In this document: positions 48,040 to 64,000 of the stretch, piece after piece | Position numbering within the stretch: position 1 is the first letter of the stretch | How the letters are laid out: every line of letters starts with the position of its first letter | Source: Piromyces finnis finn | Lineage: Eukaryota; Fungi; Neocallimastigomycota | Assembly (NCBI GenBank): GCA_002104945.1 | Contig: MCFH01000023.1 | Span: 186,001 to 250,000, forward strand | Direction: 5' to 3' | DNA length: 64,000 nt | The notes under the pieces: model-generated | The model's database searches: none | What the model was told of the DNA's origin: nothing | What the model saw: the letters and a program-made list of their open reading frames with translations, nothing else | Made by a program: the position numbers and the translations under genes

Positions 48040-49398
48040 TTAGTTTTCATCAGAACTATCAACTTCGTCTTCAAGAGGAACATCACCAACATTGATAACA
48101 TCTTCATCATCAGAAATAGTTAATTCATTGTCATCAGTGGAATTTGGAGCTTCAGTATCATCTTCAGCAGGTAAAGTTTCATTTTCATCAATAGTAGATG
48201 GAACTTCATCTTCAATATCAACAACATCAGCACCAAGAGATGGAGCTTCAACTTCAGTTTCAGATCCAGCAGTGTTGTCATCATCGATTTCTGGAACATT
48301 GTCACCAGTAGATGGAGCTTCAGCTTCAGTTTCAGATCCAGCAGTGTTGTCATCCTTGTTTTCTGGAACATTGTCACTAGTAGAAGAAACTTCATCATCA
48401 ATTTCTGGAACATTGTCACCAGTAGATGGAGCTTCAGCTTCAGTTTCAGATCCAGCAGTGTTGTCATCCTTGTTTTCTGGAACATTGTCACCAGTAGATG
48501 AAACTTCATCATCGATTTCTGGAACACTGTCACCAGCAGATGGAACTTCTGGAACTTCATCATCAGATCCAGCAGTGTTGTCATCATTGTTTTCTGAAAC
48601 ATCATCACCAGCAGATGGAACTTCTGGAACTTCATCATCAGAACCAGCAGTGTTGTCATCATTGTTTTCTGAAGTAATATCATCAGCAGATGGAACTTCT
48701 GGAGCTTCAGTTTCTTCAGCTTCAACTTCAGATTCAACACTTTCATTAGCTGGAGCTTCATTGCTGTCTTCAGTTGATGGAATCTTTGGAGCTCTAACTA
48801 CACAAACTCTCTTCTTCTTTGGAACTTCAACTTCATCGTTAGATGGAGTAGATGAAACATCTTCACTTTCATTTGGAGTTTCACCAAAAACTTCATCAGA
48901 TGGTTCAACTTCAGCATCAGATTCAACATTACCTTCTTGAGATGGAACATTTGAAACATCATCAGTAGTTGGTTCATTTGGAGCTTCATTATCAGATGGA
49001 ACTTCATCACTAGTTGGTTCAACTGGAGCTTCATTTTCTGGAGTGTTGTTTTCATCATCCTTTATTTCATCATCAATTTCATCCTTAATTTCATCACCTT
49101 CATCAGATGGTTCTTTGTCTTCATCATCTTCTTCACCAGATTGGTTTTCAGTAACATCATCATTAGCTGGAACTTCTAGTTCAGTTTCAGTTTCTGGTTC
49201 AACTGGAGCTACAGATGGAAGTTGTTCAATATCAGAATCAATATCATTATCAAGCTTTGGAAGATCAGCAATTGAAACATCAGCAGTTTCATCTGAAGAT
49301 AAAGCATCAACTTCGTTGCCATTTGGGATTGGAGAAGCCATAGTAGTCATGGCACAAGCAATAAAAGCAAGAACAATACTTAAATTTTTAATTTGCAT
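48040..49398 (-). CDS. Secreted highly acidic D/E/P/S/T-rich repeat protein (452 aa)
   Basis: Signal peptide plus ASPIP, internal repeats (DDNTAGS..E..PS.GD.VPE) and one basic island KKKRVCVVR. Confidence 0.8.
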   Translation of the reverse strand: MQIKNLSIVLAFIACAMTTMASPIPNGNEVDALSSDETADVSIADLPKLDNDIDSDIEQLPSVAPVEPETETELEVPANDDVTENQSGEEDDEDKEPSDEGDEIKDEIDDEIKDDENNTPENEAPVEPTSDEVPSDNEAPNEPTTDDVSNVPSQEGNVESDAEVEPSDEVFGETPNESEDVSSTPSNDEVEVPKKKRVCVVRAPKIPSTEDSNEAPANESVESEVEAEETEAPEVPSADDITSENNDDNTAGSDDEVPEVPSAGDDVSENNDDNTAGSDDEVPEVPSAGDSVPEIDDEVSSTGDNVPENKDDNTAGSETEAEAPSTGDNVPEIDDEVSSTSDNVPENKDDNTAGSETEAEAPSTGDNVPEIDDDNTAGSETEVEAPSLGADVVDIEDEVPSTIDENETLPAEDDTEAPNSTDDNELTISDDEDVINVGDVPLEDEVDSSDEN

Positions 49399-50545: not shown

Positions 50546-50554
50546 TATAATAAG

Positions 50555-50629
<75 letters not shown>

Positions 50630-51115
50630 TTCCGAGTGCATTTCTCCCATCGATCAGAGTTAGCTCCAATGGTGGTTCTTAGAGAAACGTTGGCTCATTC
50701 CTATTGCTAGGTGGTTGTGACCCTCCTGGTCTGTCATACTGTTTCTTCAGCTTCGACGCTCACTTAATCCATGTACATTAGATGCATGTCGTTGTACGAT
50801 ATTTCACAACTACAATGCTAAGCCTCTTATAGTCAATTTGATCACGTGTCAACCGCCCCCTAATGTTTACACTTAAATTGATTAAGGAATATTATGTGTT
50901 TTTGGCATAGCCTAAGTCACCACTTATTAAGTTCTAATTTGGAATGTACCATGTACACTAGACCCTCTCAGGCCGGCTAGACGAGTGTTATTATCATAGT
51001 AGTAAATTAGAAAGTTCATTTATACTTACCTGAATATCATAACCCAACCCATGGCAAACCCAGTGGGAAAATCCACAGGCACTGACATCTGCGGGGTCGA
51101 ACTATAATAAGAAAA
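50546..51115 (-). mobile_element. Non-coding poly(A) retroposon (SINE-like or 5'-truncated LINE 3' end) with 13-bp TSD
   Basis: TATAATAAGAAAA at both 50546-50558 and 51103-51115; 68 T at 50559-50626 (poly-A on the - strand); 476-bp body 50627-51102 of roughly 40% GC with no ORF. Confidence 0.9.
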
Positions 51116-55093: not shown

Positions 55094-58000
55094 TTAATTC
55101 TTATTTATTGGTGGGGTTGCTCCAAGATCTAATAAATATTTTACAAAAATATCATGATGATTTTTCATGGCTAATGAAAGGGCATTGTTTCCTTGTTTAT
55201 CAACTTTATTAATATCTACTCCATTGTTTACTAAATAATCAATAATTTTTATATTGTTATCATTTTTGGCATGAATACAATGAATTAATGAATGTTGACC
55301 AAAATAATCTTCACTGTTCACTTCAGCTCCATGTTCTACCAAATATTTTACAATCCTTTCTTTTTTTTCTATATTTTTTTGTTGTTCCTCTTCATATTCT
55401 TGATCATTAAAATACGAAAATTGATAATAATCTTTATTGGAATTAGTTGGATTTTTTATGGTATAGATTAATGGGGTTTCATCATACCTCATTCTTTGAT
55501 TCACATTGGCTCCACATGAAATTAAAAATTTAACTATTTTTTCGTTATTTCCTTGAATCGCTCGAATTAATGGATAACTCGTATCATCATCACTTTTATA
55601 ATTTTTTTTATTGATGTCTACCCCATGCTTTATCAAATAGCTTATGATTTCTATATTTCCATTATCAATGGCTTTTATTATTGGTGCTACAGCTCCATTG
55701 TCTTGATGAACATCTGCACCATGGTCAATTAAATATTTAACTATTCTTTCTTTTTTCCGTTCAAAACTAATAGCACTTTCATCATCATCTTTGCTTCTAT
55801 CATCAAATCCGTAATAACGATTGTAATGATCTGTTAAACCAATGGCACAAGATAACGGTGTAAGATCATTGATATCACATTGATTAACATTAGCACCGTG
55901 ATCAATCAAATATTTAATCATTCTTTCATTTTTTGTTTTAATGGCTGTTAAGAGGTGCGTCTGCCCTCCTTTTAATATATTAATATTGGCACCGCAATCT
56001 AGTAATAGGGCAATACTATTTAGATTTTGGTGTTGAATGGCATAATAAAGCGGTGTAAATCTACATCTTTCTCCGTTAATATGAGATCCTTTATCAATTA
56101 AATACCTTATTATATTTTCATCCCCATGGATGGCTGCAAAAGATATTGCTGTCTTCTCACCGTCCCTTGTTACTTGATTAATATCTGCCTGGTTCTCTAT
56201 TAAATATTTAACAAGTTTCATTTGTCCATTTTGAACAGCATGACATAAAGGTGTACCATTATTATTATCGTTTATATTTATATTAGCTCCTTGATGAATA
56301 AGATATCTAGCTATAGTGTCATTGCCATTGTCTATTGCGCATATTAAAGCATCACTCTTATCTATGTTAGCCCCATGCTCTATTAAAAATCGTACAATAG
56401 TTTCATTATTTTTTTGAACTGCCTTTTTTAATGGACGACCATTTATTCCTTCTTTCTCTATATTGGCTCCCGAATCAACCAAAAATCTAATTAAATTTTC
56501 ATTTTCATTTTGAATTGCGTAGATTAATGGTGTTTCATACATTTGTCTGCATCTATTTATATCGGCACCACATTGAATTAAATATCTTGAAAGATTTTCA
56601 TTATTGTTCTTTACAGCGCAAACGAGTGGGATATTAACAAAATACCCTCCACCATCCATATTAATATCAGCACCGCATTGAATTAATAGTTTTACAAATC
56701 TTTCGTCATTATTATTTATTGCAATAACTAATGGTAATAAATTTTCTGATTTGTTAACATCAGCACCACAATATATTAAGTATTTAACCATAGCTTCATT
56801 TCTGTTTTGGATTGCTAAATTCAATGGAGTGTTACTGGTTTTTATGTCTGCACCATTATCAATTAAATATTTAACGATATTTAAATTATTGGTTCTTGAA
56901 GCTTCAATTAATGCGTTAGGATCAATTTTGGCTTTATGATAAATTAAATAATTTATGATCCCTTCCATATTATTTTTTATTGCTAAATCTAAAGGTGACT
57001 CTCCATCCTTATTTGTTACATTTACATCAGCACCAACATCAATAAGATACTTAATAATATTTTCATTGCTACTTACTATTGATTCTAATAACGGTGAATT
57101 AAAACATAATTTATAATTGACATCAGCTCCTGATTCAACTAAATACTGAATAATATTCATATTTTGATTTCGTACAGCATAAATTAATGCTGATTCACCT
57201 TGATTTATTTCTGTGTTCATTTCTACTCCATATTCAATCAAATATTTTACGAGATTTTCATTATTATTTTTTATTGCAACTGTTAAAGAAGTATCACTAC
57301 CAACATTATGGCTTCTTTCATTAATGTCAATTCCACATTCTATTAAATATTTAATTATATTCTCATTGTTTGTTTTAATTGCTTCTACTAATGGTGGATT
57401 TTCCTTGTAATTGTTTAATTTAGCACCATTTCTTATTAAACATTTAACAATATTCTCTTTTGCGGTTTGAATGGCTAGAATTAGTGGACATTTATAACTT
57501 CTAGAATATGAATTTACATCGGCACCTTGATCAATTAAATATTGAACTAACGATTCCTTACCATGAATAATTGAAAAACAAATAATTGGATCATAATTAT
57601 TATCATTTTGATTACCTTTTATAGAATTATGGTATATGATATTTAATAAATGGAATGATTGCAAATTTTCTGATTTATCCATTTTTAATATACTTTTAAA
57701 TAATTCAGACTCAATATTTATATGGTTAATTGATGTTAAATTCGATCCATTTGTTATTAAGTATTTTATAATCATTTCGTTTTCTTCCATAATAGCATAT
57801 ATTAACGGAGTAAAACCTTGACTGTCTTTAGCATTAACATTCAAATGATGTTCAACAAGGCATTTTATCATTTCTATACTATTTTTCTTTACAAGTATTT
57901 TAAAAATTTCTATATTTTTATTAATGCTTTCAATATTTGCTGGATCTTTTTCTAATAATTCTTTTACTACTATTATATTATTTGAAATTATTGCTAATTT

Positions 58001-61000
58001 TATTGAAGAATAGTTATTATCGTTTTTTATGCTATGATTTAAAATACTATTGATCTGAATATATACTTTCTGATATTCAGTATTATTATATTTTTTATTT
58101 ATATCATAGAGAGATTCATTTGAATTATTTGTGAAACTTTTATCTGCCCCATTATCTATTAAAAGTTTAAAACTATCAACTTTTCTCTTTTTTATTGCAA
58201 TACTAAGTGGTACATCACCTGATCCATTTTGTTCATTAATATCTGCTCCTTTATCAATTAAGTATTTTACCACTTTTTCACAGCCATGTTGTATTGAATA
58301 AATTAACATAGAATCCTTATTTTCATCCTTTTGATGAATTTTTAATATATTATTATTGAAAATGGTCAAGATATTTGGCAGTTGAAGATGAATAAAGCTT
58401 TTAAATAATTCAATATTTATATCAATACTCTTCAATTCCTCCCAGCTTGCACCACATTTTATTAAATAATCGATAATTTCTTTATTTTTTGACTCCACTG
58501 CATAAACTAATGGCGTATACTTGTTAATATCTTTAACGTGTATATCAATAATTTTTGGAATAATTTGTTTTAACATATTTACATTGTCTTTCTCTACTAT
58601 GAAATCTTTAATTTCTATTTTATCATTAACTACACTGATATCATCTAACTTTTTTAGTATAGTTAATACACTATTTTCAATATTATTTGAAATTGTATAT
58701 ATCAGATTTAAATATTTATATTTATATTGGATTTTTATATTGTTACTTAATAAAAATTTCAAAATATCAACTTTTTTATCTATAATTATTTCCTTAATAA
58801 AATTACATTTAAGTGAGTTAATATTCACATTATTTTCAATTAAATATTCAATTAATTTTATATATCGTTTTTCAATGGCATATATTAATAATGTTTTACC
58901 ATCTCTATATTGTTTATTGATATCTAATCCGTAATCAATTAAAATTTCTAACAAATCCATTCTTTCCTTTTCAATAATTTCTATTAATATTTCGTTTAGG
59001 CTTGAATTTTTAATAATAAAAGGATATATTTCAGAAGATTTTGGATTATTATTAAAATAATTATCTAATAAGCTAGTTTTATTTGGAACATCTTGGAAAT
59101 CCGCATTACAACGAATTAAATAATGAATTAAAGGCTCATTAGATATATCAATTGCACATTTTAATAGACTTTGAGGATAATCTTCATTTGAACTATTAAA
59201 TTTACTATTTACATCAATATAATCCGGAATTAATAATTTTAGCATAGGAAGATTAGTCTTATAAATGATTTGCTCTATAATTTTATTTATAGAATTATGA
59301 ATATTAATACCATTATCAATGAAATATTTTGCTATTCTAATGTTATCAGAAAATACAGCACGACATAAAAGTGAAAAACCATATTCATCTTTTCTATTTA
59401 TATTAATATATTGAGGTATAAGTTTTTGTATTATATCTAATCTATCATTATTTATTATAGTTTCTATATCTTCATCTAATAAACTGTCCTTTTTATTATG
59501 TTTAATTAAACATTCTATTTTTGAAATATCTTCATTTTCAATAGCATATCTTATGATCGACATTTTCTTATTATTTTTATTTATTGAGTTATTTATATTT
59601 GCACCATTTTCAACAAGAAGTTTAATTATTGGTAAGGCATTTTCTTTAAAAGCTATCATAAATATTGATAATCCATTTTTATCATATGAGTTTACATCAG
59701 CACCATTTTTAATAAGATCACCCATCCATTCTAATTTTTCCTTCAATGAATAATTTCTCATCATTGTAATTGCTACTAATAATGGATTTTTGTCTATATA
59801 AGTTTTATTTATTGATACATTTTTATTCTTAAGTAATAATAATAGTAATTCACGATTTTTTAAGTGTATTGAAATTTCTATTGAGGAGTGACCTTTAAAA
59901 CAACTATTATTTTTTATTGAATTAATTTCTATATTTCTCAAAATTAAATTTTTTATCAATTCTTTGTCTTCTTTGAAAAGTGCAAAATGTAGTATATTAT
60001 ACCCATAACAATCCAACGAGTGAATATATGAAGAGTTTATTAAAACTTCAAATATTTCTTGACGACGTAATAAATAAGAAAGTGTTAGAGGAGTTAACCA
60101 ACTATCATTGTTAACATTGTTATTCTCATTTTTTATATTATAATTTTCATTATTTATAAGAGACTTTACATTATCAATATTGTTTTGTTCGATAGCAGTT
60201 AGTAATAATGATGATTTTTTATTTTTTGAATTTATGTTTATTGATACGCTTTTTCTAAATAAATGTTGCAAAATTATGTATTTTCTATTTTTTAAAGCTA
60301 ATATTATAAGTGGTATATTATTAATATTTTTTATATTGACATTGGCACCTTTATCTAGTAAATAATCAAATATTTCAATTATTTTACTTTCATTGTCTTC
60401 GTTTAATGAATAAAATGCTGTAATTAAAGGATAATCGCCATTTTTGTCCCTACTATTAATATTTATTTGATTATTTTCTATTATATATTGAATTGGTTTT
60501 TTAGAACATAATTTAATATAAATATTTAATAACAATATTAAATAGGCATTATCTAGTCCTTTTAATTCAAGGTTATTAATTTCTGTTATTGATTCGAAAT
60601 CTTCAATATTAAAGAGTTTTTCAATAAGAGATTTTGCTACTAAAGTATTATCAATTTTATTTGAAAACAATAATAAATTTTCAATCAAATCTTTTTTAAT
60701 ATCATTATTATTTAATAAATATTCATTAAAATAATTTATTAAATGAACATTATTATTCTTAATTGAAAATTTTAAAATTTTATTTATATCAATTGATTTA
60801 TTATCGATGTATTTTTTTAAATCAAAAATTTCATGATGGAATAAATAATTAATCAAAAAATCAATAAAAATAGAATTATTAATTTTACCAATTATCATAA
60901 ATATTTTTTCTATATTGTTTGAATCCAGTTGTATAGGATAAAATTGCTTAAAATATTTCTCTATTATATATTTAAAAATTTGGAAATCTTTAATTTTAAT

Positions 61001-64000
61001 TACTACTTGTAAAAATTCTTGAATACAAATATTTTCTTCATTAAATGTAGGATGATGTGTTATATTGTTCATCATGAATTCTATTAATTCAATATTTTCT
61101 ATTTTGCTTATAGTAAGAATCATATCTTTATTTATATTTTTATTTTTTAATGTAAATGACGGACAGTTGAATAATTCTTTTAATAAAAACTTTATATTTG
61201 TAATATGGTTCTTTTGATATATTAAGAGAAATATTATTTTTTTTATGTTAAGACTATTAAAATCAAATGATTTATGTTGAATTATCATTTTTATTGTAAA
61301 TTTTATTAACTTTGAAAATATATCCTCATTAAAACCTGGCTGTGTATTTTGTAACTGATTTAATATAAAAAGAATTTCATCAAGATCTATTAATTTAAAA
61401 CCAAATGTTTTATGATTAATAAATTGTTCTATCACCATTTTAATTAATACTATATGCTCTATTCTATTTCCATATTCCATTTGATAACAATAAATTTGAT
61501 TAACTAAAATACTTAAAAGATTTTCAAAAGATATAACATTAAAATCGAATGTTTCATTATTCAAAGCAGTATCAATAAAAAATTTTGTTAAATATATTGC
61601 CTTATTTTTAAATGTAATTTCAATTGAGGTATTTAATGATTCTAATATTTTTTCTAAATCAAAATCTATAAAATTGAAGTTTTTGTGATTTATCCATTTA
61701 TGAATATAGAATTTAAAGAATTTAAATATACTTAAATTATTCAAATCTAAAATGCCCATTTTTTCGTAAAATTTAACATTTTTAATGTTGTATTGTTCTT
61801 TATCAAATACTTTTGTTAATAAAAAAGTTAAAATATTGTAATGATTACATATATATTGATAATTTATTAATATATTTTCAATATCGATATTCTTAAAGTC
61901 AAGAGATTGACTTTTAAATACTTTTTCTATTAAAATATAATCATCGTTTTCAATAGCATGATTTAATATACATTCAATTTCATTTTTATCTAAAACGAAA
62001 TTTAATTCTTTTTTTAGTAGACGATAATGATATAATATTTCCAGAAAACCCGAATCTTTATTTATGATTATATTTTTATACCAATCTTTTCCAATATCAA
62101 TTTTTGATTCTTCATTTACCATAATATTTAATAATTGATTATTTGATAATGGTGTTTTATGTGTTGATAAAGTAAGTAAATTTAATATAAAAGTATTATC
62201 AAAAACATTATATTTAAAAATAGTAAATAATAGATCATATTTTCTGTTTTTAATAAGAATGTCTAGGAATTCCGATGATATAGTTATATTATTCTTTATT
62301 AATAATTTTAAAGCTTTCTTGTTTAATAACCTTTCTTCATAAAGTTTGACAATTATTTCTTTTTCATGAATTTTAAAATTTATATTTGCTCCATTTTTTA
62401 AAAATAGACTAGCTATATTATATCTCTTATTGGCAATGGCACAATATAATGGTGATTTATATTTTCGAGAATCCTTGGAATCCACAACAACATAGTCTAA
62501 AGATAAATAATGACTCATTAAAAATGAAATAGTATTGAAAGAAATATCTTTTTCAATTGTATATATTAATAAATCAAATAGCTTATTATTAAAATATGAT
62601 AAAATAATATTATATTTAATAATATATTTTTTTAATTCTAGAATGTCTTCTGTTTCGATTAATTTTATTATAGTTTTAAATCTACCCTCACTATTATTTA
62701 GATTGTCTATGAAAAAACTGTCTAATGGAATTAAATCCATTTTTTTAATATTTTGTATAAATGATTTCTTTCTTTCATTACAATATATGTATTTATCTTT
62801 ATCTAATAATTGAAAAATATCTTTAAATATTTGTTCTTTATTCCTATTATCATTGATATATAAAAATGTGATTGCTTCGAAATTATTGCTCTCAAGAGCT
62901 TTTTCATACATTAAATCATTAATATTAATTTTTGTTTTTTCTTCATACAGAATTCTATGTAATTGTTTACTTGATAATGTTGTATGATTTTTATATATAG
63001 ATAGTAGTTTCAATATAAACAAATTATTATATATATACTTTTCAAAAATACATTTTAACAAATCCAATTTATTATCAACAATTAATTGATTAATGGTATT
63101 AGGCAAAATTTGAAATTGACAATTTAATATATATTTCAATTTTTTATTATCTAATATTCTATCTTCATAAAGCCATGTTAATATATCTATCTTATTTATA
63201 TTTAAACCAATTTTTATTAAGAAATCAAAAAATTTAAATTTGTTCTTTGATAAAACTAAGTAAAAAAGGGTTGTATCGTCTTTATAATTTTTATCTGAAG
63301 AGAAATCTAAATTTTCATAATGACAAGTTTTATAAATAAAATTTAGCATTTCAATTGAATAACTACTTTTTATTGTAAATTTCAGTATATCATCTTTTTG
63401 GTTAAAATCTTCTCGATAATCAGCGAGTTTAATATTATTTTCTTTTATATATGATTTTAAATGGTAGACATTATTATTTTTAATTAATTGACTTATTTTA
63501 TATTTTATTTCTTGCTTTGTTTTATTACTTTCTAATATATTTATTAATTTTTCTTTTGTTGAAATTTTGAATGGGCTATTTTTTATCTTATTTAAAAAAG
63601 GTCCTTTTAATTTATTATTTTGATTTAATATTGAAATGATATTCTTTGCAATTACATTTGTTTCTCTAGTATCGTACAAATATAATAGCATTATTGTCTC
63701 AATACAATTATTCATTATTGCTACTTCGTACATAGTTTTATTAAATTTTATTTTTTCTTTTTCCTTTTTAGTCATGTCAAATAATTCGGTATAAGATAAT
63801 TTTGTTTTATTCTTTTGAAACGATAGTAATGAAAGAATGAAACTATTATCATAGATATAATTATTAAAAATTTGATTTAAGAATACATGATTATTTATTT
63901 TAATTAATTCCATTAATAATTCTGAATTAATATTAAGACCATTTCTTATTAAATATTGAGTACCTCTTTTTGTTTTCTTTAATATTATATTACCATATGA
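55094..64000 (-). CDS. Giant intronless ankyrin-repeat protein (>2,968 aa; 5'-partial)
   Basis: The frame stays open for 29 more codons upstream of the 63913 ATG to the window edge (SYGNIILKKTKRGTQYLIRNGLNINSELL). Architecture: N-terminal ~275-aa super-repeats, a central FDF-type helical repeat region, and dozens of ankyrin repeats (LI.YLI..GA.IN) from ~60470 to the stop. Confidence 0.9.
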   Translation of the reverse strand, partial: SYGNIILKKTKRGTQYLIRNGLNINSELLMELIKINNHVFLNQIFNNYIYDNSFILSLLSFQKNKTKLSYTELFDMTKKEKEKIKFNKTMYEVAIMNNCIETIMLLYLYDTRETNVIAKNIISILNQNNKLKGPFLNKIKNSPFKISTKEKLINILESNKTKQEIKYKISQLIKNNNVYHLKSYIKENNIKLADYREDFNQKDDILKFTIKSSYSIEMLNFIYKTCHYENLDFSSDKNYKDDTTLFYLVLSKNKFKFFDFLIKIGLNINKIDILTWLYEDRILDNKKLKYILNCQFQILPNTINQLIVDNKLDLLKCIFEKYIYNNLFILKLLSIYKNHTTLSSKQLHRILYEEKTKININDLMYEKALESNNFEAITFLYINDNRNKEQIFKDIFQLLDKDKYIYCNERKKSFIQNIKKMDLIPLDSFFIDNLNNSEGRFKTIIKLIETEDILELKKYIIKYNIILSYFNNKLFDLLIYTIEKDISFNTISFLMSHYLSLDYVVVDSKDSRKYKSPLYCAIANKRYNIASLFLKNGANINFKIHEKEIIVKLYEERLLNKKALKLLIKNNITISSEFLDILIKNRKYDLLFTIFKYNVFDNTFILNLLTLSTHKTPLSNNQLLNIMVNEESKIDIGKDWYKNIIINKDSGFLEILYHYRLLKKELNFVLDKNEIECILNHAIENDDYILIEKVFKSQSLDFKNIDIENILINYQYICNHYNILTFLLTKVFDKEQYNIKNVKFYEKMGILDLNNLSIFKFFKFYIHKWINHKNFNFIDFDLEKILESLNTSIEITFKNKAIYLTKFFIDTALNNETFDFNVISFENLLSILVNQIYCYQMEYGNRIEHIVLIKMVIEQFINHKTFGFKLIDLDEILFILNQLQNTQPGFNEDIFSKLIKFTIKMIIQHKSFDFNSLNIKKIIFLLIYQKNHITNIKFLLKELFNCPSFTLKNKNINKDMILTISKIENIELIEFMMNNITHHPTFNEENICIQEFLQVVIKIKDFQIFKYIIEKYFKQFYPIQLDSNNIEKIFMIIGKINNSIFIDFLINYLFHHEIFDLKKYIDNKSIDINKILKFSIKNNNVHLINYFNEYLLNNNDIKKDLIENLLLFSNKIDNTLVAKSLIEKLFNIEDFESITEINNLELKGLDNAYLILLLNIYIKLCSKKPIQYIIENNQININSRDKNGDYPLITAFYSLNEDNESKIIEIFDYLLDKGANVNIKNINNIPLIILALKNRKYIILQHLFRKSVSININSKNKKSSLLLTAIEQNNIDNVKSLINNENYNIKNENNNVNNDSWLTPLTLSYLLRRQEIFEVLINSSYIHSLDCYGYNILHFALFKEDKELIKNLILRNIEINSIKNNSCFKGHSSIEISIHLKNRELLLLLLKNKNVSINKTYIDKNPLLVAITMMRNYSLKEKLEWMGDLIKNGADVNSYDKNGLSIFMIAFKENALPIIKLLVENGANINNSINKNNKKMSIIRYAIENEDISKIECLIKHNKKDSLLDEDIETIINNDRLDIIQKLIPQYININRKDEYGFSLLCRAVFSDNIRIAKYFIDNGINIHNSINKIIEQIIYKTNLPMLKLLIPDYIDVNSKFNSSNEDYPQSLLKCAIDISNEPLIHYLIRCNADFQDVPNKTSLLDNYFNNNPKSSEIYPFIIKNSSLNEILIEIIEKERMDLLEILIDYGLDINKQYRDGKTLLIYAIEKRYIKLIEYLIENNVNINSLKCNFIKEIIIDKKVDILKFLLSNNIKIQYKYKYLNLIYTISNNIENSVLTILKKLDDISVVNDKIEIKDFIVEKDNVNMLKQIIPKIIDIHVKDINKYTPLVYAVESKNKEIIDYLIKCGASWEELKSIDINIELFKSFIHLQLPNILTIFNNNILKIHQKDENKDSMLIYSIQHGCEKVVKYLIDKGADINEQNGSGDVPLSIAIKKRKVDSFKLLIDNGADKSFTNNSNESLYDINKKYNNTEYQKVYIQINSILNHSIKNDNNYSSIKLAIISNNIIVVKELLEKDPANIESINKNIEIFKILVKKNSIEMIKCLVEHHLNVNAKDSQGFTPLIYAIMEENEMIIKYLITNGSNLTSINHINIESELFKSILKMDKSENLQSFHLLNIIYHNSIKGNQNDNNYDPIICFSIIHGKESLVQYLIDQGADVNSYSRSYKCPLILAIQTAKENIVKCLIRNGAKLNNYKENPPLVEAIKTNNENIIKYLIECGIDINERSHNVGSDTSLTVAIKNNNENLVKYLIEYGVEMNTEINQGESALIYAVRNQNMNIIQYLVESGADVNYKLCFNSPLLESIVSSNENIIKYLIDVGADVNVTNKDGESPLDLAIKNNMEGIINYLIYHKAKIDPNALIEASRTNNLNIVKYLIDNGADIKTSNTPLNLAIQNRNEAMVKYLIYCGADVNKSENLLPLVIAINNNDERFVKLLIQCGADINMDGGGYFVNIPLVCAVKNNNENLSRYLIQCGADINRCRQMYETPLIYAIQNENENLIRFLVDSGANIEKEGINGRPLKKAVQKNNETIVRFLIEHGANIDKSDALICAIDNGNDTIARYLIHQGANININDNNNGTPLCHAVQNGQMKLVKYLIENQADINQVTRDGEKTAISFAAIHGDENIIRYLIDKGSHINGERCRFTPLYYAIQHQNLNSIALLLDCGANINILKGGQTHLLTAIKTKNERMIKYLIDHGANVNQCDINDLTPLSCAIGLTDHYNRYYGFDDRSKDDDESAISFERKKERIVKYLIDHGADVHQDNGAVAPIIKAIDNGNIEIISYLIKHGVDINKKNYKSDDDTSYPLIRAIQGNNEKIVKFLISCGANVNQRMRYDETPLIYTIKNPTNSNKDYYQFSYFNDQEYEEEQQKNIEKKERIVKYLVEHGAEVNSEDYFGQHSLIHCIHAKNDNNIKIIDYLVNNGVDINKVDKQGNNALSLAMKNHHDIFVKYLLDLGATPPINKN

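Follow-up and report, generated by a model that had tools for sequence, protein, structure and literature searches.

A recent, 5'-truncated insertion of an apparently undescribed SINE family in the anaerobic gut fungus Piromyces finnis, and its likely LINE driver

In a genome of ~18% GC, what is a non-coding block of more than twice that GC content, bordered on one side by a long homopolymer run, and how did it arrive there? The question is raised by a locus in a 64,000-nucleotide stretch of the Piromyces finnis assembly GCA_002104945.1 (contig MCFH01000023.1, positions 186,001 to 250,000 of the forward strand), which we call the window and to which all coordinates refer unless stated otherwise. 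A preliminary description, made from the letters alone, had noted a perfect 13-bp TSD, a pure 68-nt poly(A) and a non-coding 476-bp body of about 40% GC in a genome richer in AT, and each of these observations held on re-analysis. The sequence TATAATAAGAAAA is present twice with no mismatch, the A run is uninterrupted, and the body has a GC content of 41.6% versus 13.4% in the 1-kb flanks, the window itself ranging from ~10 to 38% per kilobase. Read in element orientation from 5' to 3', the features are as follows.

51103-51115, no strand assigned: TSD on the 5' side of the element (TTTTCTTATTATA in element orientation), identical to 50546-50558
51093-51102, minus strand: remnant of a B-box-like motif, 10 of the 11 nt of GGTTCGACCCC, the break falling after the motif's first G
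50627-51102, minus strand: SINE body, 476 bp, 5'-truncated and non-coding, equal to positions 60-535 of a 535-bp form
50712-50761, minus strand: two-hairpin segment, element positions 401-450, common to the last codons of LINE-B, a resident LINE
50559-50626, minus strand: poly(A) tail of 68 uninterrupted A, which reads as 68 T on the plus strand
50546-50558, no strand assigned: TSD on the 3' side of the element, directly after the tail, identical to 51103-51115

Given the local base composition, a 13-mer would be repeated perfectly at two fixed junctions with a probability of ~4e-6, and the same TSD was recovered automatically when the window's own copy was processed together with other copies of the genome. 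What the preliminary description had missed is the 5' truncation. The full-length element begins 59 nt further upstream than the window copy, in which the cut lies inside an otherwise perfect B-box-like motif; with these 59 nt the putative promoter has been lost. A copy without its head is therefore no source of further copies, and because it is 100% identical to other copies it must be equally young. We consider it highly probable that the window copy was inserted recently, was dead on arrival and belongs to a non-autonomous poly(A) retroposon, a SINE in the broad sense.

The insertion is intergenic. An unannotated frame of 452 aa (48040-49398, minus strand) lies on one side, with the insertion ~1.15 kb upstream of it, and a frame of 2939 aa with ankyrin repeats (55094-63913, minus strand) lies on the other, with the insertion ~4 kb downstream of it. 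The window copy is inert and promoter-less, with no evident functional consequence. Two observations on the neighbours may be recorded in their own right. The interval 48040-49398 is the GC-richest kilobase of the window (38%) and carries, in addition to the 452-aa frame on the minus strand, an open frame of 282 aa on the plus strand; searches of these frames against Pfam gave no match. The 2939-aa reading frame is a single open frame consisting nearly entirely of ankyrin repeats (Ank_2, E 7e-184).

The preliminary description had made its case depend on the existence of further copies, and these are plentiful. DNA searches were run against the window's own assembly (56.46 Mb, 232 contigs). 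In a search with the body, the best 40 of 848 first-look candidates were all 100% identical over 475 bp. A 29-mer from the 3' end followed by A6 had 222 exact matches, and a 33-mer from the 3' end had 265 with up to three mismatches, which gives ~265 copies with a 3' end; at the other extremity, the B-box junction had 213 matches and a 37-mer from the 5' end of the full-length form had 179 (up to two mismatches). All 75 of the B-box junctions that were listed lead on into the body described here, and no second SINE with this head but a different body was seen among them. We also encountered older, diverged copies, one of them 86% identical and 5'-truncated (L065) and one a terminal fragment at 81% (L001). 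The presence of such older copies beside near-identical young ones indicates a repeat family with a history and a very recent burst from a single source. The copies are dispersed, and 30 of the 32 that were examined at the junctions have a perfect TSD of their own. One locus departs from this pattern: at G000:C150:542348-542602 (minus strand), three matches to the B-box junction lie 110 nt apart, two of them with the 5' head, and these coordinates suggest that the element's first ~110 nt are repeated there in a short tandem array.

The full-length element is 535 bp long, short in the sense of less than ~700 bp, with a GC content of 41.7%. The preliminary description had named common 5' ends and tails as features to look for, and both were found: 27 of 30 copies extend 57-60 nt (mostly 58-59) upstream of the first base of the window copy to a uniform start, and A tails are present across the copies. 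The start reads GTCGTTCC, or (G)TCGTTCCAG, the first bases being GTCGTTCCAG, and the element ends in GGAAGTT followed by A(n). The longest ORF in any frame of the full-length element is 52 aa, and the element is non-coding. A processed pseudogene of a host mRNA, a possibility that the preliminary description had raised against its own reading, is ruled out by the lack of any longer ORF and by the uniformity of a 535-bp unit in hundreds of copies.

The head of the full-length element bears features that would be expected of a Pol III promoter. A B box at positions 59-69 matches the Pol III consensus GGTTCGAnnCC perfectly, and in 724 kb of two-strand sequence the motif has a single occurrence outside SINE heads. 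An A-box-like motif, TATCCTGGTTG, begins at position 15 and agrees with its consensus at 8 of 11 positions. The spacing of 44 nt between the two is canonical, the element starts 14 nt upstream of box A, and a 5-bp hairpin with a 7-nt loop can be read from the sequence between the boxes. Two runs of T on the sense strand, T5 at 11-15 and T4 at 91-94, could serve as Pol III terminators. With default settings ARAGORN found no tRNA in the window or in three full-length copies, and with thresholds lowered to 80% it made no tRNA call on the SINE head. At thresholds of 75% or less it proposed a 'tRNA-Leu' at 11-81, which we discarded as 11-22% of shuffled sequences score likewise. Searches of Rfam with E values up to 10 gave no match for the element, the tRNA model included, nor for a full-length copy, and the whole window gave none at the gathering threshold. 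No acceptor stem can be drawn for the head, and the genomic sequence examined contained no host tRNA gene with which the head might be compared. A tRNA-derived SINE (SINE2 type) has a head that can be aligned to a tRNA, and this head cannot be so aligned. By its boxes the head would be Pol III-like; its descent from a tRNA is not demonstrated. It should be added that LINE-B has an AATAAA close to its 3' end and the SINE has none, which would fit an A tail that is encoded in the genome and carried on a putative Pol III transcript.

These features of the head bear on a different origin of the family, in which the copies would be retrocopies of one host ncRNA gene, transcribed by Pol II or otherwise, made as by-products of a LINE and without a Pol III promoter of their own. 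Such an origin would suit the identity of the best 40 copies, as from a single source, and it would sit well with the failure to find similarity to tRNA, 7SL, 5S or snRNA, with the T5 run at 11-15, and with the extra 5' G or 19 nt seen in some copies, as from a capped or upstream-initiated transcript. There is also a fungal precedent in WEIRD of Magnaporthe, a highly expressed ncRNA that has been retro-copied by a fungal LINE (PMC2104539). We nevertheless judge it quite improbable. A perfect B box placed 44 nt from an A-box-like motif, with one other occurrence in 724 kb, speaks against it, as does the lack of an AATAAA that the LINE possesses; the older copies at ~81-86% identity record the history of a repeat family; ~265 copies would be high for a family of pseudogenes; and the element includes a segment derived from a LINE, to which we return below.

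Two further properties of the element were recorded. At positions 129-139 (window 51023-51033, minus strand) the sense strand contains CAGGTAAGTAT, a strong 5' splice-site consensus, and sense insertions in genes could thereby supply a cryptic donor site. We also considered whether the element is a generally structured RNA. Compared with shuffled sequences, the whole SINE has a z of +0.26 and its last 154 nt a z of -0.10; since neither folds better than the shuffles, this reading was rejected.

The manner of integration was examined in 32 copies, comprising 30 from the body search and two more. Perfect TSDs were found in 30 of the 32, with lengths of 10-16 bp and a mode of 12-13, and the tails, mostly pure A, ranged from 3 to 132 nt with a median of ~38. 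Three of the 32 copies are 5'-truncated (the window copy, L016 and L028); the flank upstream of L016 yielded no usable 5' sequence of a LINE. One copy carries an extra G at its 5' end and another, L030, carries 19 extra nucleotides. A variable TSD (of the ~7-20 bp class), an A tail and 5' truncation are hallmarks of L1-type target-primed reverse transcription (TPRT), and all of them are present here. Taken together, the TSDs, the tails of up to 132 nt and the occasional 5' truncation fit TPRT by a LINE that is active now or was so until very recently.

Two of these copies merit separate description. The TSD was unclear in two of the 32, and one of them (L027:1474-2034) is a full-length SINE without a TSD, in antisense orientation, situated between two LINE fragments, one from the RT of LINE-B and one from its 5'-truncated endonuclease region. 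These two fragments are not collinear, and the arrangement is therefore a nested or rearranged insertion. The other copy of note, L030:1409-2030, is a SINE that interrupts a LINE-B frame near the end of that frame. Its TSD is TTTAACAATATCA, and its 19 extra nucleotides, GGGGCGTAAAAGAAAGAAG, lie between the TSD and the first base of the SINE. These could have come from upstream initiation, 5' transduction or template switching.

Target sites were compared in element orientation over the 30 copies with a clear TSD. A T is found at position -1 in 24 of 30 versus a background of 40% (p = 1.1e-5), an A at +1 in 19 of 30 (p = 0.02), and A or C at -2; across the 30 copies there is no enrichment of A at +2 to +4. 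The T at -1 implies that the primed strand is nicked just 5' of an A and that no oligo-T primer is needed. Human L1 has the target consensus TT/AAAA (TTTT/AA on the bottom strand), and the sites of the SINE family do not conform to it. The preliminary description had suspected an endonuclease preference unlike that of L1, and this stands, as there is no oligo-A at the start of the TSDs and the T at -1 prevails. The observation on which it relied, that the window TSD starts with TTTT, does not carry over to the family. At the window site, position -1 is a C and positions +1 to +4 read TTTT, which is atypical of its own family; this start is incidental, an A being the first base in 19 of the 30 TSDs.

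Which LINE, then, would have supplied the machinery? A search of the genome with the Pfam model Exo_endo_phos identified two LINE families. LINE-A has frames of ~1478 aa in ~40 copies, and LINE-B gave more than 100 hits at the same score, with open frames of 1512-1522 aa that encode an APE endonuclease and an RT. The RT region of LINE-B (L027:24-1583) matches RVT_1 with an E value of 1e-34, and its closest solved structure is human L1 ORF2p (E 3e-23, versus 2e-14 for R2 proteins). The C-terminal 494 aa of LINE-B gave a weak zf-RVT signal and no sign of an RNase H domain. LINE-B may be called L1-like. The one relative of the LINE-B RT that a protein scan of metagenomes returned is encoded, at 55% identity, on a 2.7-kb contig that is too short to reach the 3' region (L087, JAEEGK010193184.1).

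The 3' end of LINE-B was obtained from the repeat that hosts the SINE in L030. Its 504-nt 3' region is itself abundant, the best 40 of 1132 candidates being 98-100% identical, and at a dozen loci a copy of this region follows a LINE-B endonuclease start, in the same orientation and at a distance of ~4040 nt, which identifies it as the 3' end of LINE-B. With the SINE removed, the LINE frame of L030 ends in TGA and is followed by a 244-nt 3' UTR, in which an AATAAA lies ~25 nt before a terminus of GATGCCGTT and an A23 tail. An old fragment of the same 3' end, ~92% identical, 5'-truncated and with an A11 tail, was seen at L015:600-1010 (minus strand); it is followed directly by GGATTATGCCATTGGTTCGAATCCGAC, a piece resembling a tRNA T arm that contains the sole other B-box match in the 724 kb. 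On many contigs we also noted matches to RVT_1 with scores of 137-146 bits, at least 150 in all, in open frames of 1300-1570 aa. The length of the match suggests retrotransposons of the LTR type, many of them seemingly intact, and several retroelement classes look to have been recently active in this genome.

LINE-B shares one short segment with the SINE. Positions 401-450 of the SINE align with the last ~25 codons of LINE-B at 45 of 53 positions (85%, E 2e-10). In LINE-B the segment lies 23-75 nt before the stop and ~270-320 nt before the tail, and in the SINE it lies 85 nt before the tail. When the two regions are folded alone, the same two small hairpins are obtained in both. The first has an interrupted stem with an inner GCUG/CAGU helix, an AAGAAA cap and a short outer helix; the second has the stem GACC/GGUC in the SINE and GGCC/GGCC in the LINE, with the cap AGGAG. 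Across five variants (a young SINE, an old SINE and three LINE-B copies) 90.8% of the cells pair, with one pair changed on both sides (A:U to G:C) and three others changed to G:U wobbles. The covariation statistics are weak with five sequences, 49 of 500 shuffles doing as well. The old, 86%-identical SINE copy in L065, ~195 nt long, keeps both hairpins by means of G:U wobbles. At L065:2100-2626 it adjoins the 5' region of LINE-A (~35 copies at 84-93%, antisense). We had considered L065 as a second family with the same tail, and this was rejected, the locus being LINE-A 5' sequence next to an old copy of this SINE. A pattern scan of public metagenomes for the module common to SINE and LINE gave no match.

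Outside this segment the two elements have little in common. The head, the body and the last 85 nt of the SINE had no similarity beyond chance to the parts of LINE-B with which they were compared, a terminal GTT being common to both, and the alignment of the last 85 nt of the SINE with the last 85 nt of LINE-B scored below the mean of the shuffles. The preliminary description had proposed a comparison with LINE 3' UTRs, a match to which would have spoken against it; there is no match to the LINE-B 3' UTR, and the only similarity to the LINE is the internal one of 53 nt. Stringent mimicry of the 3' end, of the type of Mg-SINE/MGL, is accordingly not what this pair displays, and what ties the 3' part of the SINE to a resident LINE is its poly(A) together with the 53-nt segment. 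The presence of an internal LINE-derived segment might suggest that the element is no independent SINE at all and is instead an internally deleted LINE, with a 5' UTR joined to a 3' piece. We hold this to be extremely improbable. No match to the SINE head (up to two mismatches) lies upstream of any of the listed LINE-B endonuclease coordinates, the terminal 85 nt differ entirely from the 244-nt 3' UTR of the LINE, and, outside the shared segment, the lack of similarity to the compared parts of LINE-B means that the SINE is not a deleted LINE.

A SINE driven by a separate LINE is thus the reading that we pursue, and LINE-B is the likely driver, to judge from comparison of the sequences. The SINE RNA would probably be captured by the LINE-B protein via its poly(A) tail together with the two-hairpin segment. 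In the mechanism that we propose, RNA of a master copy would be captured by the endonuclease/RT protein of LINE-B (ORF ~1512 aa), which would nick the bottom strand just 5' of an A, the top strand having T at -1. Synthesis of cDNA would be primed on the A tail of the SINE, and a second nick 12-13 bp away would give rise to the TSD. In the case of the window copy, reverse transcription or 5' joining would have halted 59 nt short. We go further only tentatively, in suggesting that the two elements form a currently active pair and that the LINE protein would find its templates by the two-hairpin module, which sits in the last codons of the LINE and away from its 3' terminus, in combination with a long poly(A). 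The SINE would have captured that module alone; this is a possibility that we hold to be less probable than not. If true, it would be a hybrid of 'relaxed' template recognition, based on poly(A), and 'stringent' recognition, based on structure.

It is also conceivable that the SINE is mobilised by LINE-A, or by both LINEs, and that its likeness to LINE-B reflects shared ancestry of a conserved 3' module. LINE-A has frames of intact length in ~40 copies, and the segment is only 85% identical to LINE-B, whereas LINE-B copies are 98-100% identical among themselves. Even so, we regard this as unlikely: LINE-B is several-fold commoner and more homogeneous, matching the very recent burst of the SINE, and among the LINE sequences compared it is the sole one shown to have anything in common with the SINE. 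The claim of the preliminary description that this is a very young insertion by an active LINE system is supported by at least 40 identical copies, perfect TSDs, tails of up to 132 A and intact LINE-B.

How does the gut-fungal family compare with SINEs known elsewhere? The best known poly(A)-tailed SINEs driven by L1-type LINEs are primate Alu and rodent B1/B2. The family resembles these in being short, non-coding and A-tailed, with TSDs that vary between 10 and 16 bp and occasional 5' truncation, in having one dominant, near-identical young subfamily as in a master-copy pattern, and in its probable driver, an L1-like LINE with APE and RT. Unlike them, it has a head that is not recognisably 7SL or tRNA, targets that show only a T at -1 and no TT/AAAA, an internal hairpin segment derived from a LINE, and a host that is an early-diverging anaerobic fungus.

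Further parallels may be named. In Magnaporthe, Mg-SINE and MGL are reported to be similar at the 3' end that is used for priming (Kachroo 1995, cited in PMC2104539), and retro-insertions are accompanied by direct repeats of 12-14 bp and include 5'-truncated copies (PMC2104539). Mg-SINE is likewise a fungal SINE, comparable in size class, and is reported to be a mimic of its LINE (PMC2104539). In contrast to that account of Mg-SINE/MGL, the last 85 nt of the gut-fungal SINE are unrelated to the 3' end of the LINE, and the common piece is internal. SINEs with a middle body taken from internal regions of LINEs are also on record (Kojima 2018, PMC5786205). Like those SINEs, the present family is modular, with a head that has a Pol III-like box and a body containing a LINE piece that is not the extreme 3' end. 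Unlike them, it has only 53 nt in common with its LINE, in the form of a putative recognition handle.

The preliminary description had ventured that this might be an undescribed SINE family of gut fungi. This agrees with our search of the literature, in which we found no paper on it and no description of a SINE for Neocallimastigomycota or Piromyces, a result that extends to the literature searched and is no proof of absence. Apparently, then, the family is undescribed and its mechanism ordinary. To our knowledge no SINE has been described in the phylum, Neocallimastigomycota, and no genetic tools exist for it.

At least 40 identical copies together with A tails of up to 132 nt imply that retrotransposition is ongoing or has only very recently stopped. 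This gives the finding a practical side in an anaerobic gut fungus for which both genetics and genome biology are still little developed. If active, the LINE/SINE pair would provide ready-made insertion-polymorphism markers for strains and would be a source of ongoing mutation near genes. It is also potentially a natural vehicle for DNA insertion where transformation tools are absent.
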